From assembly GCA_020536535.1 (NCBI GenBank), contig JAHLWZ010000193.1, forward strand, positions 51,596-115,595: 64,000 bases of DNA. The letters run 5' to 3'. Shown here in pieces: positions 40,175 to 46,968 of this stretch (position 1 is the first letter of the stretch; each line of letters begins with the position of its first letter). The stretch is from Pelomyxa schiedti. Lineage: Eukaryota > Protista > Evosea. The notes below the pieces were generated by a model. The model ran no database searches. It saw nothing but the letters and a program-made list of their open reading frames with translations, and was not told the DNA's origin. Made by a program: the position numbers and the translations under genes.

Positions 40175-42562
40175 CTACACCAACAAAGTGCTTTTTTTTC
40201 TTGGCTTCAATGGCCCCTTCCCCTTTGGCTTTGCACTGCGAAGTGAGGTGCACCAGGAAAAACTTGAGGCATTTGTTGTGGTCCCAGCGGGGTATACGTG
40301 AATTGTGGGTATGTTGGTGGGTACAAAAGGGCCACACGAGAGTAGGGATTTGTGGGCTGCTGTGCTTGTTGTTGCTGGGATGCGCCAAGAGTGGAATCGG
40401 GAAGAATGGTGTGTGGAACTTGGAGTGGTAGCTGGACTGGGACTGGCCGGAAGGAGCACAGTCTGGGGTCTTGTTGGCTAGTTAAATTCGGAGATGGAGG
40501 TGAGCGGTAATTAGGGAATGCGGCGAGGTTCCACTGTGGTTGTGAGTACAGAAGCGTGTTGTCAGGTTGTGGTTGAGTGCGGGGTGAAGTGGTTGTGGTG
40601 GCTGCGGTACCTTCTGGGTAGCCTAGTATAAGGGGGGAAGCTCCGCGGAAGAATGAGTACTGGTTGGGGTTGGTGGGAAGGTGGGGTGATTGGGACTGAA
40701 GTTGTAGGTGCGGTGATTGGGTGCTGGCTGGAGTGTAGTCGGGGGGTTGCTTGCGGTCTACTGCTTGGTATTGAGCCTGAGAGGGTTTCAGTGAATCCGG
40801 GGAGGGCCGCGCCTGTAATGACGTGGAGTGTGAGGTATCGAGTTGTTTCTTTTGCGGTTGATTTTTGTCTGCTGTGGCTATTGAAGAGGTAAGACGGAAG
40901 CCACTGAGGTTTGTGGATTCCTTAGTTCTCTGTGAGGCATACTGAGGTGGTGAACTGAAGCCACCTTGAGGGAAGTGTTAATTTGGCACGTGAATGAGAG
41001 ACTCCACACCAACGGGACTTGAGCTTGGAACTGTACGAGATTGTAATAATTGGTTTTGAGATTCCTGTTTGCCACTTTCCACCCTTATGGGGTTGCAAGG
41101 ACCAGGAGATACAGGAGAATGGGTTGGTGATTGAAGATATGGTGGCGATACAGGTGAATGTGAGGGCCAATTTGGAGATATAGGTGAGGATGGTTGACTG
41201 TGCCTGAGAGGTGACACAGGTGACTGAGGGGGGCTGTTATCTTCATTTTCTGAAGGGTTCATGGGAAGGGTGTACTCAGGGGGAATCTTGGAATTGGTGA
41301 ATATATTCTGTTGGGCGGGTAAAATTTGGCTCATTATTTGATTTTGGGGATCAAGTAGGGACTTTTGGTACGCAAATGGTTTTTGTGCTTGCAAAACAGG
41401 ATATTGTAGCATAGTGAAGGGTACAAAGATATCGTCCTGCTGCATTAAATGAGGTAGAAGGTACTGGTCTTGTATCTATAGAAATTTGAGTGAACAAAAA
41501 AAAAAACTCGTTCCAACCTGTGGAGATTGTGTCTGTACCAGTAATTGTGGCTGTGATGGACTCTTGGATTGTGCAATTAATGAAGGGGATTGCGTGCTGG
41601 AAATCTGAGACTGTGAATGATGTGGCTGGAGTTGAGGTTGTTCCTGTTTCTGTGGTTGAAGACTCTTTGGTGATTGCCTTTTCGAGAGGTCATCTGATTC
41701 GTTGTTTAGAATAGGGTTCTTTGTGTTTAGTTCTTGTGGTTTTTTTTGACCTTCCTCTTGCTTTAGCTCCGCTTCCAGCAGAACCTACAGAAGTTACAAG
41801 CTTCACAATTGCCAAAATACCAACCTTTTTGAGAGCACAGAATAGCTTTGCTTTATTACCTTTAAACTTTTCTAGTAGCTTCTGTAGTTGTGCTATTGGT
41901 TTATCAAAAAGAGCAATACTGATTTAAAAAAAAATACCAATTTTTTCACTTGAATCCAAAGCAGATGAGTTTTCAGCCCCTCCTTGTGCGGCGTTCTCTC
42001 CGCCCTTCCCACAGTTTTCATTCCCATTAGTTTCGTTATGACCCTCGGCAACCAAGTTTTCGCCTTTGTGGGCCTCCTCGTCACTCCCACCCGCACCCGC
42101 ACCCGCACCACCGGCCCTTGTTCTCGATGTGGCACTGCCAGTCGCCTCGCCGTGTTCCCCGCTCTTGTCTCCCTGCTTCGCTTCCGTCTCCTCTGCTCCC
42201 TGCGCCCCATCCCCGCTCGCATTGCCGCCGTCCCTCCGTGTTGTCTCCTCTGCCCCCTTGGCTGCCTCCTCCTTCTCCGTTGCCCCATCGCCTCCCCTGC
42301 CCCCCGTGGCCGCCGCGCCCTTGCTCTCGCTCGCTAGGTCGCCGCCGTCGGCTCGCCCCCCCTCCCCTGGGGTGTTGCTCCGTTGTTGTTGTCGTTGCTG
42401 TTGCTGTTGCCTCATAGACGCCATCTGCAGTCTCCTGGCCTCGGCTGCGTGCCTCTTCAGTTCCAGCGCGTGCTCCCGTACCATATACACCACCGTGGCT
42501 CCTGGTGCTGTGGGTACTAGCAGCGCCCCGCTGCCCCCATGCCCCCGCCCTCCCTTACTCAT
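40175..42562 (-). CDS. Hypothetical low-complexity (Q/P/S/T-rich) protein, multi-exon, 3' end uncertain
   Basis: Consecutive minus-strand ORFs (41924-42562, 40978-41445, 40175-40459) separated by GT-AG introns with poly-T tracts; no domain recognised. Confidence 0.55.
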
Positions 42563-42630
42563 TCCCGCGGCTTCTCACTTGGAGGTTTTTTTTTTTTGTT
42601 TGGAAATCGGCAATTTTTCTTTTTTTTTTT

Positions 42631-43613
42631 CTATAGAATAGTACAACCACCACCGCCGCAGTCACAACCGCCACCGCCGCAGTCGCCGCCGCCGCAGCCG
42701 CCGCAGTCGCAGTTGCCGCAGTCACCACAGCCATCACAGCTGCCGCAGTTGCCACAGTCACAGAGTTTCCCACAGTCACAATCACAGTTGCCACAGTCAC
42801 ATTTTCCACAGTCACCACAGTCGCACTTGCCACAGTCTCCACAGCCATGGCAGTCACAGCACTTGCCGCACTCGCAGCAGCCGGCGGATCCACAGTTTCC
42901 GCAGTCACACTTGCCGCAGTCGCCGCAATCGCACTTTCCACAGTCGTGGCAGCACCCGTCCTTGCAGCATCCATCCTTGCAACAGCCATCCCGGCAGCAC
43001 TCTCCCTTGCAGCAGCCATCACAGGAGCAGCCAGAACAGTCACAGTTGCCGCAGTTAGTGTGTTTGCAGCACTCGTCACAGTGGCAGTCACAACAATCAC
43101 CCCCTTGGCAACATAAGTCCCCGCCGCAGTTGCACTGGCAGCAGCCGGATTTGCAGCAATGGTCGCAGTTACAGCAGTGTTCATTTCCTGAACAGTCACA
43201 GCAGCATACGCACCTGGTTTCCAGTTTATTTGTGGTTTTTTTTTTTGTTCACTCAAATTTCTATAGATACAANNNNNNNNNNNNNNNNNNNNNNNNNNNN
43301 NNNNNNNNNNNNNNNNNNNNNNNNNNNNNNNNNNNNNNNNNNNNNNNNNNNNNNNNNNNNNNNNNNNNNNNNACACATACCCAGGATCACTGCCCTTTGG
43401 GGTACAAGGTCCACAGTAGTAGTAAGGGCCGTAACAGTAACAAGGAGAGGAATCACAAACACAAGCGGTCCCTCTCTTTTTATGTACTAGGGTGGCACTG
43501 GGCGCGGAGTTTGTACTAGTATCGGGACCAGCACTAGGGGCCGTTGTAGTGGTATTGGGATCGACGTTTGTGTATGTCATCTCTACGGCCACGGGCATTG
43601 GTTGTACCTCCAT
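42631..43613 (-). CDS. Ultra Cys-rich metallothionein-like protein with C-terminal CaaX (CTIL), two exons, ~271 aa
   Basis: Exon 1 (43613-43381) ends at a GTATGT donor in phase 2. Exon 2 (43213-42631) reads CVCCCDCSGNEHCCNC...CGKCDCGDCGKCDC...GGGGCTIL*. This frame is not in the ORF track. Confidence 0.8.
43273..43372. other. Assembly gap (100 N) inside the intron of the Cys-rich gene
   Basis: Run of N. Confidence 1.
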
Positions 43614-43685
43614 CGTTGCTGTGGGGTACACGTAATTTACGGTTCCTGTGCCCTACTTGATATCAGTACATTACGTTGTTCGACC

Positions 43686-45709
43686 ATGGGTAAACCTCTG
43701 CGGCATACACCACCGGTTGTTCAACCATTTTTCGCCAAATTTTTTCTGAAGGAAAGTAGCAACTCAGACTCGCGCCAGCTAGTGTCGCAGTGGATCCACT
43801 TTATCATACTCTCTCCAGTGAACTCCTGTATTTGTTTCGGCCAGGTTGCTGGGATCGCCAGTCGGGGATTTTGTGGCGAGTATTTTTTTTCTTCTCGCAG
43901 ATGCGCCGGGTAACACACCCCGAAGAGCAGAAAGAAAGATACACAGACACCACTAGTGTCGGGAAGCGACGTAGTCATTGGCCTGTGGAGAGGGAATCGT
44001 ACCTTGAAAGCAATAGCCGGGACTCCGTATCGAACTCAGTCGGCCTTATTATTGTATACAACATCAACATTCTTACTTCGAGGCTGGTGTTAATGTGGAA
44101 TTGTAGGCTGTTTGGATAGCCAATGTACTCATGGACAACTACATCAATAAGGGGAAGTTGGTGGACTTCTCCCTACTGTGGTACCTGTTAGAGGACCTAC
44201 ACATTGCTTGTGCCTTGAATGTAGCTTTCTTCCTCTACACATTGTTGGCATGTTATACCTTGGTCAAGCTCATTGCCCACGGAGTCATAAGAGGTTTCAA
44301 CTGGGTCGCCTACACACTCTATGCCATTCTCCAAGTGACACTTATTGCGGTAGTGATTATCTCTTTTCAGCTTTTCTTAATTGCGTTTTGAAGGGTCCCG
44401 TATTTGTCCTTTACTTGGTGAATCCCGATTGGCGTCCTCTTTGCGCAATCTCATCTACAATGCAAACAGCCGTCTTCAGCATGAAAGCACATTCATATTT
44501 TTTTACCAATCGGCATATATATGAGTACATTCATGCCCTCTCTCGTACAGACAGAGACATTGGGCCTCCTGAAAGACTGGGACTGAAAGGAGTGATTTTC
44601 GGGCAAAAGCTATCCACGGTAAACCATAGTGATTTAGAGATTATTTCACATTACCCTAAATTAGGTTGAACGAGCAAATCGCTTCAATGGCATTACAAAA
44701 TTCAGGTATTTCCCTTTTCAATCACAAGTGATTTATGTATGACAAGCTGTTTCTGGAAGTTCATGATTTATCCTACATTGTGCTATTATTTGGAGTATCC
44801 TGTACTAGAGCATATCTCCAAACGGAAATTGGTGCTTCATGCATCACAATCCGCTGTTTCCTTCTTTATTTCCTACGTGTGTCTGGTTAATGTTTGTATT
44901 CCTGCATGGAGAACAATTTTGGACAGGCCAGTGGTTGCACTTGTTAGAACCCTAATACCCGGTGTGCAACTCTCTACCTTCTTGGAATCTAAATGATGTC
45001 TAGGCTTTGTCATCTGGATGTCAATGTTCTTTGGGGTCTTCCATGGGTTACTCAACTTGGTTGCTGAGGTAATATCTCTTCATTGGCACTTCAAGTTTTA
45101 ATCATTTTTACAAATCCAGATTGTACGTTATGGAGATAGACGTTTTTATGGGGCCTGGTGGGAATGTCGTGATATGCAAAGCTGGTGGAAGGAATGGAAC
45201 TGCTGTGTTTCGTATAAGAACCCTTTTGTCTCCAAAGACGAACTTACTTTGTAGGGATTGGATGCGACGACACATGTATTTCCAGAGTATTCAAGTTGTT
45301 TAGTTTCCATGTATGTGGTTAGCTCATCTTTACGACTCAGGACGCCAAATTCACATCATGGTGGGCCATGTCATCTGTCTTCACTGTCAGTGCACTGTGG
45401 CATGAAGTTGTCCCTTCACACAACCCAAGCTAATTTTCTTTTATTTAGTGGATACTTATGTTAGCTCTGAGGCAGCTACGGCCCATTCTGTCCTCTCTTA
45501 TTCTTGGACAAATAGTACTCATTGCAGTTACAAGTCACCCGATTTTCCGAAACACTAGGCTTGGGAACCTTGTCATTTGGTTTGCATTTGTTGTTGGCTA
45601 CCCCCTCGTTCTGAACTTGTATGCCTTTTCCTGGTTAGTGAGACCTCTCTTTTTTCATTTTTCACCAAACAAAAGGTGCTACAGCAATCCAACTATTTGC
45701 CACTCCTAA
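43686..45709 (+). CDS. MBOAT sterol/diacylglycerol O-acyltransferase (ACAT/DGAT1 family), multi-exon
   Basis: MKAHSY, FMIYPTLCYYLEYP, FHGLLNLVAEIVRYGDRRFYGAWW, WWKEWN..VSDWMRRHMY, SALWHE (catalytic His), LGNLVIW. Confidence 0.92.
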
Positions 45710-45852: not shown

Positions 45853-46968
45853 CGGCAAAACATTTCGTTTTGCCCTTTTTTCTGTTTTTAGTTGCTCTCC
45901 AAACTTCAACCTTTTTAATGCGACGTTTCTTTCCCAAACCTCAACAAAAAAATGAGTCGAGGTAGTGCCACATTGTTGAGGGTACCTGCTTACTTCTGTC
46001 CTCTCTGCAACAGGTTGATGGAGAACCCCACAACGGCGAGCGACGGGTTCACCTATGAGAGAGATGTGTTGGACAACCATCTCCGACATCACGGAAAGAG
46101 CCCAATGACGGGTGAAGATTTACACCCGTATATCATGATCCCCAACAGAGCTCTACGGTGCGCCATCCAGAGCTATCAAGAAAAGAGAACGGGGATTGTA
46201 GATCTAGGCGATACCCTTATTGCAGCTCGGCGTTTACTTCAGCTTGAACACGAAGAATACATGCGCTGTCTTGCAGCCAAAGAGTTTGATGCTGCGTTGG
46301 CACTCTTGCACAAGGTGCATGATGAATGTGAAGACAAACACCGACTCTGTATCATGCTTGGAGAATTCGTTGCGGCCCAAAATCGTCTACTTGCTCTACG
46401 GGAAGAAGGCCTGGAACATCTCTACTCTGGCAGAACTGACGAAGCTCTGGCAGTGTTCCACCAATTTTTGAGTGAGAAACCAGAAGATGCTTATGTTCTC
46501 GCCTATGTCGCTCAAGGGTATGAAATGAGAGGTCAATACGTAGAAGCGATTCAGTATTACGCCGCGGCGCTATACATGGGTATGCACAATCCAAATTCAC
46601 ATTTACTTAAATTACGATACTAACAAGGTTTTACAAAGCAGCACAGTTAGGCTCCGGCGGACATCTTACCGCAACAGAGGTACACTCTTTGCTCCAAACT
46701 TTTTATACTAACGTGAACAAGGGGAACCTCGAAGTTCCTCCCCCTACAACAGTTGGGAGGTGGAAGAATAAGTGTGATCTTTTGTTGGAGAGGTGCAAGT
46801 GTGATTCAGAGTTCACGCAAGCCCTGTAATAATTACGAAACATGTTGAAGTGTTTTTCACGGGGAATTAAACTGTAGTTAGCCTGGCATCCTTGTGCAGG
46901 GTGCCGGGGTTACGAAATTCCCATCACAGCTATTTATAGGGAAGAGGGCAAAACGAAATGTTCCGCCG
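45853..46968. repeat. Inverted repeat pair flanking the U-box/TPR gene (exact 18-bp core, 24/27 when extended)
   Basis: AACATTTCGTTTTGCCCT at 45859-45876; its reverse complement AGGGCAAAACGAAATGTT at 46945-46962. Confidence 0.85.
45952..46829 (+). CDS. U-box + TPR protein (E3 ligase-like), spliced at the 3' end
   Basis: VPAYFCPLCNRLMENPTTASDGFTYERDVL...SPMTGEDL...IPNRALRCAI; TPR-like GLEHLYSGRTDEALAVF and AQGYEMRGQYVEAIQYY. Confidence 0.85.

Follow-up and report, generated by a model that had tools for sequence, protein, structure and literature searches.

Part of a contig from the amoeba Pelomyxa schiedti reads as an open frame in more than one way, and it also contains an assembly gap. The question is whether this locus holds a gene, and if so, on which strand, in which frame and for what kind of protein. 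An earlier note, made from the DNA letters, had proposed a hidden two-exon gene on the minus strand, coding for a giant metallothionein-like protein that ends in a prenylation signal. This proposal was followed up here. The window is the whole stretch of DNA that was analysed, 64,000 nucleotides long, and positions are counted from its first letter.

The first part of the question can be answered plainly. The locus is a two-exon gene on the minus strand that is transcribed and spliced, with a product of 271 residues; gene, structure and product are established. The coding part of exon 1 (43381..43613, minus strand) starts with the ATG at 43613-43611 and, in translation, holds 77 codons plus two bases. 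It is followed by a GT..AG intron at 43214..43380. This intron is 167 bases long as assembled, 100 of which are the N gap at 43273-43372. A glycine codon is split by the junction; exon 2 (42631..43213) opens with its last base, continues with 193 codons and closes with the stop codon TAG (42633-42631).

The read data used cover 41000-45000 and comprise three single-cell RNA-seq runs (X1, X2 and X3) and a DNA-type run (X4). The three RNA runs belong to a single study and derive from a single sample, and the RNA evidence consists of contigs. In X1 and in X2, one contig each joins 43211 to 43379, skipping 167 bases. With the cut moved by two bases this becomes 43213/43381, which is exactly the junction that had been predicted from the letters. 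The shorter side of the joint is 179 letters long in X1 and 235 in X2, and there are no letters between the two sides. Read on the plus strand, the joint has CT..AC at its ends, equivalent to GT..AG on the minus strand. The same joint was looked for in the DNA-type run X4, where it is absent. The junction in the RNA contigs settles the strand of the gene, and it shows that the gap falls within the intron over its full length.

Exon 1 is covered by RNA contigs over 43379-43557 in X1 and 43379-43613 in X2. For exon 2 the coverage is 42631-43211 (X1), 42796-43211 (X2) and 42631-43214 (X3), with zero letter differences.

The gap is the sole N gap in the whole 64-kb window, and it is entirely intronic. 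Given that the exons are joined in RNA, this means that the coding sequence is continuous and that the true length of the gap is irrelevant to the protein. Extra exons inside the gap had been named in the earlier note as something that could overturn its model. The X1 and X2 junction contigs have none, and because nothing stands between the joined exons, a hidden extra exon is excluded for these transcripts.

Five nearby introns in the same RNA contigs measure 41-53 bases, versus 167 as assembled here. The edges of the gap (43229-43272 on one side, 43373 on the other) both adjoin runs of T. One X4 contig starts at 43373 with 17 loose letters, eleven T's and then GAGTCA, which are absent from the window. 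Homopolymer runs inside the intron are probably the cause of the gap.

Open frames alone decide nothing at this locus. The same stretch is open in an Ala/Thr/Val-rich frame on the minus strand and in a Pro/Gln/Ser-rich frame on the plus strand, the two that the earlier note had called decoys. Such extra open frames are to be expected, given that the repeat is rich in TGY codons. The frame that begins at ATG 43613 is nevertheless the only one that is open through both exons. Scripted exon-wise translation takes it to the final TAG, giving 271 residues with 79 cysteines. Of the other minus-strand frames, the second is broken by 3 stops in exon 1, the third by 19 in exon 2. Together with the RNA junction, this open frame bears out the strand and the phase of the proposed two-exon model.

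The repeats themselves tell the same story. When internal windows of 30 bases were compared at an identity of at least 80%, 154 pairs passed, and all 154 lie at offsets divisible by 3. The tandem-repeat periods are likewise all multiples of 3. Differences between the paired copies fall on codon positions 1, 2 and 3 in the numbers 28, 31 and 86 (chi-square p = 2.6e-10), and among the six frames the synonymous share of these differences is highest in the cysteine frame. The third-position bias argues that the repeats diverged under selection for the cysteine protein frame. For annotation this locus is a warning: what hides the real frame is a pair of longer frames, also open in this repeat, together with the gap in the assembly of its intron.

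The transcript ends are somewhat less sharp. The X2 contig leaves the genome at 43613 and continues into other letters, which we take to be a cDNA-amplification primer tail followed by a Nextera adapter. This puts the 5' end of the mRNA at 43613 or slightly within it. The ATGG that the genome has at 43613-43610 might just as well be the last letters of the primer. Translation may therefore start at Met1 (43613) or at Met6 (43596..43598, minus strand), which is the first AUG if the mRNA begins at about 43609-43613; the product would then have 266 residues. Further upstream, there is an in-frame stop at 43655-43653.

At the other end, the RNA contigs of X1 and X3 reach as far as 42631, where the stop codon finishes. 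The genome continues from there with an A-run on the minus strand (A11 G A5, 42614..42630). No RNA contig of X1-X3 covers 41804-42607. Either the 3' UTR is very short or the contig ends reflect oligo-dT priming on the A-run.

Upstream lies an intergenic spacer of about 280 bases (43614..43892), common to this gene and a divergent neighbour on the plus strand, with RNA from 43893. The spacer contains no MRE-like (TGCRCNC) or AP-1-like (TGANTCA) site, although this lineage's own motifs may differ from these.

The surroundings yielded some further observations. The plus strand neighbour spans 43893-44962, and its RNA contigs reveal GT..AG introns at 44054-44106, 44349-44392, 44618-44663 and 44704-44744. 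Its exon products resemble a multi-pass membrane protein. An assignment as a sterol/diacylglycerol acyltransferase was dropped, as Pfam and PDB searches on single exons gave nothing. Here run X2 departs from the window twice, with G>T at 44294 (depth 3.3) and an extra T behind 44497 (depth 12.6), which may be errors or alleles. Further along the plus strand, Pfam places a U-box domain and then TPR repeats in a 223-residue frame at 45952-46623, which looks like a CHIP-like E3 ligase.

On the opposite side, 70 bases past the stop of the cysteine-rich gene, there is a 212-codon Gly/Ala/Glu-rich frame (41924-42562, minus strand) with no RNA contig and no Pfam match. Within the same region, 31-letter contigs of X4 at 42382-42410 reach a word depth of up to 575, versus about 15-21 elsewhere. 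This is a CAA/CAG-type simple repeat, which must be frequent in the sample. Beyond it is a Pro/Ser/Gln-rich gene around 40978-41732 (minus strand), again with no Pfam match. It hosts a 42-base minus-strand intron at 41476-41517, seen in the X3 RNA contig 41299-41732.

So what kind of protein is this? The exon 2 product has 193 residues, 73 of which are cysteines (37.8%), accompanied by 45 Gly, 28 Asp, 11 Lys, 9 Asn and 6 His. There is no Phe, Trp or Tyr in it. Counting overlapping motifs, it has 15 CC, 21 CxC and 30 CxxC, and the spacers between the cysteine clusters are made of Gly, Asp, Lys, Asn and Ser. Exon 1 encodes a head of about 47 residues that is rich in Thr, Ser and Pro and free of cysteine, and then a short part containing six each of Cys and Tyr. 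In the protein as a whole, cysteine makes up 79 of 271 residues (29%), there are 32 Asp, Lys outnumbers Arg by 14 to 2, and the net charge is -22.

Much of this had been read correctly by eye. A hand count of about 73 cysteines in about 193 residues turns out to be exact, and the ending GGGGCTIL before the stop is indeed what the translation gives. The strongest 19-residue hydropathy window in exon 1 scores 0.15, which amounts to no signal-peptide-like or membrane segment, and this agrees with the reported absence of a signal peptide. The statement that the protein lacks aromatic residues holds for exon 2 (0 of 193) and fails for exon 1, with its six tyrosines.

All 79 cysteines sit in the roughly 224 residues after the disordered head, and they do so in two repeat styles. 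The CC-type half (exon-2 residues 1-90, 42943..43212, minus strand) has 37 Cys, 13 CC pairs and 5 His. Within it are the CCRDG/CCKDG pentapeptide repeats (42946-42999) and a tandem repeat of period 15 (42949-43020). The CxxC/CxC-type half follows (exon-2 residues 91-189, 42646..42942, minus strand), with 36 Cys, 17 CxxC, 11 CxC, 32 Gly and 16 Asp. It is built from CGKCDCGD/N-like units, with Gly-rich CGGGG units at the end, and shows tandem repeats of periods 24, 39, 21, 15 and 9. The pattern C-G-x-C-D-C-G matches five times in this half.

AlphaFold was run on exon 2 with no alignment, and gave a mean pLDDT of 40 and no fold without metal. This prediction agrees with a metal-dependent fold and is not proof of one.

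Known relatives would be the shortest route to a function. The exons were searched separately, and exon 2 was used for the large protein libraries. In Pfam, neither exon matches any family at E <= 1, and this includes metallothionein, HMA, Fer4, G-gamma, J and GTPase domains. A word-indexed library of 5.8 billion proteins returned 4384 candidates for exon 2, with zero at E <= 1e-3. HMMER on 1.84 billion representative proteins found no true relative. It did produce two matches, a DAGRLD-repeat protein and a DCGTAPKP-repeat protein, which were set aside as unrelated low-complexity repeats. For each exon, the ESM Atlas gave no usable match and the PDB sequence search nothing meaningful.

In a protein search of its own genome the gene matches itself alone, which makes it single copy. 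Pattern matches on contigs C80, C562, C597 and C974 proved to be other frames of Gln/Pro/Thr-rich repeats, not cysteine-rich genes. By these searches, the gene is an orphan without detectable relatives. It follows that conservation can be assessed neither for the cysteine pattern nor for the CaaX box.

That box is the sequence CTIL at the C-terminus (42634..42645, minus strand). It is preceded by a GGGG linker, and there are further cysteines at positions -9 and -11 from the C-terminus. The rule for substrates of geranylgeranyltransferase I (GGTase-I) is Cys-a-a-X, in which a2 is aliphatic and X is Leu, Ile or Met (PMC10541624), and CTIL conforms to this rule. In a yeast reporter it was also one of the few sequences that human GGTase-I modified to completion (PMC10541624). 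The host genome has three Prenyltrans loci, whose best PDB matches are GGTase-I beta, RabGGTase beta and FTase beta. There is also an ICMT match of 55 bits and a weak Rce1-like match of 31 bits. The statement that a CaaL ending is a geranylgeranylation signal is supported here: CTIL is a good substrate, and the enzyme is encoded in the genome.

How easily could such a tail arise by chance? Composition by itself would put a cysteine at -4 in 38% of cases. The aliphatic part is another matter. Ile and Met are absent from the 190 residues that precede the tail, and Leu occurs there twice and Val once, so that an ending in Ile-Leu departs clearly from what the protein is otherwise made of. As a rough estimate, an ending of this kind has a chance of 0.2-0.5% for a random tail, and of about 1e-4 given the protein's own composition.

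The CCKDG repeat occurs once more in the genome. A pattern search found it at G000:C4:29199, at the start of a gene for a choline-transporter-like (CTL/SLC44-type) protein (L016:1483-1887, which is G000:C4:29199-29603). There it forms part of a 62-residue N-terminal extension with 28 Cys. A Choline_transpo domain lies at G000:C4:30669-31690, on the same strand as the CCKDG-tailed frame. Residues 56-127 of that frame align with residues 2-72 of human CTL1, including the first membrane helix (E = 1.9e-6). The CCKDG tail ends in GCCCC, and in the alignment this stretch falls on the GCC at the N-terminus of human CTL1, immediately ahead of the helix.

The CCKDG stretches of the two genes are identical at 14 of 18 residues (pairwise E = 6e-5). 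Common descent of the two is not established by this match, because it is short and of low complexity. In the choline-transporter-like protein the cysteine repeats are an N-terminal tail of a multi-pass membrane protein, whereas here they are the main body. The N-terminus of CTL1 is cytosolic. In both genes the CCKDG module is predicted, judging by sequence, to lie against the cytosolic face of a membrane.

Taken together, we give an even chance to the explanation that this is a geranylgeranyl-anchored, metallothionein-like metal-thiolate protein. GGTase-I would lipidate the cysteine of CTIL, after which the last three residues would be removed and the new C-terminus methylated. The lipid would then keep the protein at a membrane, on the cytosolic side, and there its reduced thiolates would form metallothionein-like clusters with Zn(II), Cu(I) or Cd(II). 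Going by the ratios of Cd7Cys20 and Cu12Cys20, the predicted capacity per chain would be about 26-28 divalent ions or about 45-47 Cu(I). Lipidation, membrane location and metal binding are what we infer; the gene and its product are observed.

How well does the protein fit the usual description of a metallothionein? Its cysteine content is in keeping with the customary 15-35% or so, at the 29% and 37.8% given above for the whole and for exon 2. The CC, CxC and CxxC clusters are present, as a CC-rich half and then a CxxC/CxC-rich half. As for aromatic residues, which are absent or scarce in metallothioneins, exon 2 has none and exon 1 has 6 Tyr beside its 6 Cys; some functional snail metallothioneins do contain aromatic residues (PMC7084494). 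At 271 residues the protein is not of low molecular weight, but with accepted metallothioneins of 257-399 residues this criterion is no longer strict. Similarity to a described family is lacking in Pfam, in the 1.84 billion representatives and in the PDB. The metallothionein-like clusters, the excess of Lys over Arg and the build from internal duplications would all fit a role in metal binding.

Several things count against the lipid-anchored metallothionein-like reading. A net charge of -22 is not what one usually sees in a metallothionein, and it would not favour contact with a membrane face that is itself acidic. The six tyrosines of exon 1 are no help either, and a cysteine at -4 comes cheap in a protein with 38% Cys. 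The missing homologs, the missing Pfam metallothionein match and the lack of an upstream metal-response motif weigh on the same side.

Of the other explanations, the main one is a cysteine-string-like, heavily S-acylated membrane protein. The prenyl group would merely recruit it, the CC pairs would be palmitoylated, and the protein would shape or mark a membrane domain. A tail that carries both a prenyl and a palmitoyl group is a classical layout known from Ras proteins, and the cysteines at -9 and -11 before the CaaX box would be laid out in this way. A palmitoylated scaffold had already been offered in the earlier note as an alternative. It gains some weight from the fact that CCKDG repeats also make up the first 55 or so residues of the choline-transporter-like protein, by its first membrane helix, with the palmitoylation itself still something we infer. 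Known acylated strings, however, are short and not acidic, which is far from 79 Cys, 32 Asp and a net charge of -22, and the C-terminal half, with its CxxC and CxC among Gly and Asp, has the style of metal binding and not of a CC string. We judge this explanation unlikely, with the proviso that S-acylation and metal binding are not mutually exclusive. It is also conceivable that the CTIL tail is not used, having arisen by chance after the last repeat, and that the protein is a soluble cytosolic metallothionein-like buffer. The frequency with which composition puts a cysteine at -4 speaks for this, and without a homolog conservation of the tail cannot be shown. Against it, an Ile-Leu end three residues after a cysteine and behind a Gly linker is improbable by chance, and what it forms is an efficient GGTase-I substrate (PMC10541624) in a genome that encodes the enzyme. 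This makes the soluble buffer quite unlikely.

The remaining two explanations leave metallothioneins behind. The host is an anaerobe of sulfidic sediments (PMC8887013), and dense CxxC motifs can also hold iron-sulfur clusters or persulfides. The protein might then be a thiol-redox, sulfide/persulfide or iron-sulfur carrier for anoxic life, and not a buffer for Zn, Cu or Cd. The ferredoxin-type spacing CxxCxxCxxxC is absent though, as is any match to Fer4 or another Pfam family, and the composition is nearer to that of metallothioneins, all of which makes such a carrier very unlikely. Finally, there might be no selected protein function at all. The frame would then be young and specific to this lineage, transcribed, and born from expansion of a TGY-rich repeat; an orphan of single copy and low complexity, with no predicted fold, is what one would expect to see. 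But the repeat copies diverged mostly at third codon positions, 271 codons were kept open versus 19 stops in another minus-strand frame of exon 2, the intron is spliced in phase, and the non-repeat tail makes a functional-looking signal. An unselected frame is highly improbable on these grounds.

The lipid-anchored, metallothionein-like protein that we prefer can be taken one step further. P. schiedti belongs to the Archamoebae; it is an anaerobic amoeba with methanogenic and syntrophic endosymbionts. It is possible, if rather doubtful, that this is the first natural lipid-anchored metallothionein: a high-capacity layer that stores or hands over Zn, Cu, Ni or Co at the membranes of vacuoles or around symbionts, with the CCKDG modules as a small lineage-specific set of thiolates at the membrane face. 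Metallothioneins are treated as soluble buffers. One that a lipid ties to a membrane would confine the storage of metal to a defined surface, and if this is true here, that surface would be near transporters, vacuoles or endosymbionts. As an example of how such proteins arise by repeat expansion in a single lineage, it would also be simple and testable.

Proteins with some of these features are known from elsewhere. In cysteine-string proteins (CSP) and Ras-type tails one finds CC in dense runs, and cysteines a short way ahead of a CaaX box. The dense CC runs here, and the cysteines near the CaaX box, are like those of such dually lipidated proteins. The known strings are unlike it in being short (about 14 Cys) and not acidic, and there is no J or GTPase domain here.

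Plant type-C G-protein gamma subunits (AGG3, DEP1, GS3) also have a C-terminal region that is long and very rich in cysteine, and in AGG3 it has a putative CaaX box at the end (PMC3718340). What sets these subunits apart is a G-gamma domain at the N-terminus, together with a central membrane helix that is predicted; exon 1 has neither.

Plant HIPPs (heavy-metal-associated isoprenylated plant proteins) share the working idea. They are described, in the part of the literature consulted, as metal-binding proteins with a C-terminal isoprenylation box that are linked to cadmium tolerance (PMC10606507). Cytosolic metal binding combined with such a box is also what is predicted here. Unlike this protein, HIPPs are plant-specific and have a folded HMA domain with one CxxC, and no cysteine repeats. 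The HMA domain by which HIPPs are recognised is absent from both exons in Pfam at E <= 1.

The nearest comparison is with the giant metallothioneins. These include TmMT of Tremella mesenterica, with 257 residues, the 9md-MT (287 residues, 81 Cys) and 10md-MT (319 residues, 90 Cys) of Alinda biplicata (PMC7084494), and the 399-residue metallothionein of Oikopleura dioica (PMC7084494). The Cd-MTs of Tetrahymena reach 193 residues and 54 Cys (PMC4862169). With the giant forms the protein described here has in common its length, the tandem duplication of short cysteine modules and the CC, CxC and CxxC clusters. Its total of 79 Cys and the implied capacity are similar too, and, as far as exon 2 goes, aromatic residues are few or absent in the cysteine domains. 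The excess of Lys over Arg, 14 versus 2, is also shared, and this asymmetry is common to all reported metallothioneins (PMC4862169).

The differences are just as clear. There is no sequence similarity, and the 38% Cys of exon 2 exceeds the 16-32% of standard and ciliate metallothioneins (PMC4862169). The protein is far more acidic, and has a Cys-free Thr/Ser/Pro head with Tyr nearby. A CaaX end is reported for none of the giant metallothioneins, and among the top-ranked literature on metallothionein and CaaX, as far as it was covered, no natural prenylated metallothionein is described; what comes nearest in that literature are the plant HIPPs and the type-C G-gamma subunits. The earlier note knew of no metallothionein family that combined such a size with a CaaX box. 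Published lengths of 257-399 residues do away with the part about size, while for the combination no precedent was found in the literature covered. The size of this protein is not new; its lipid-anchor signal is the new feature.
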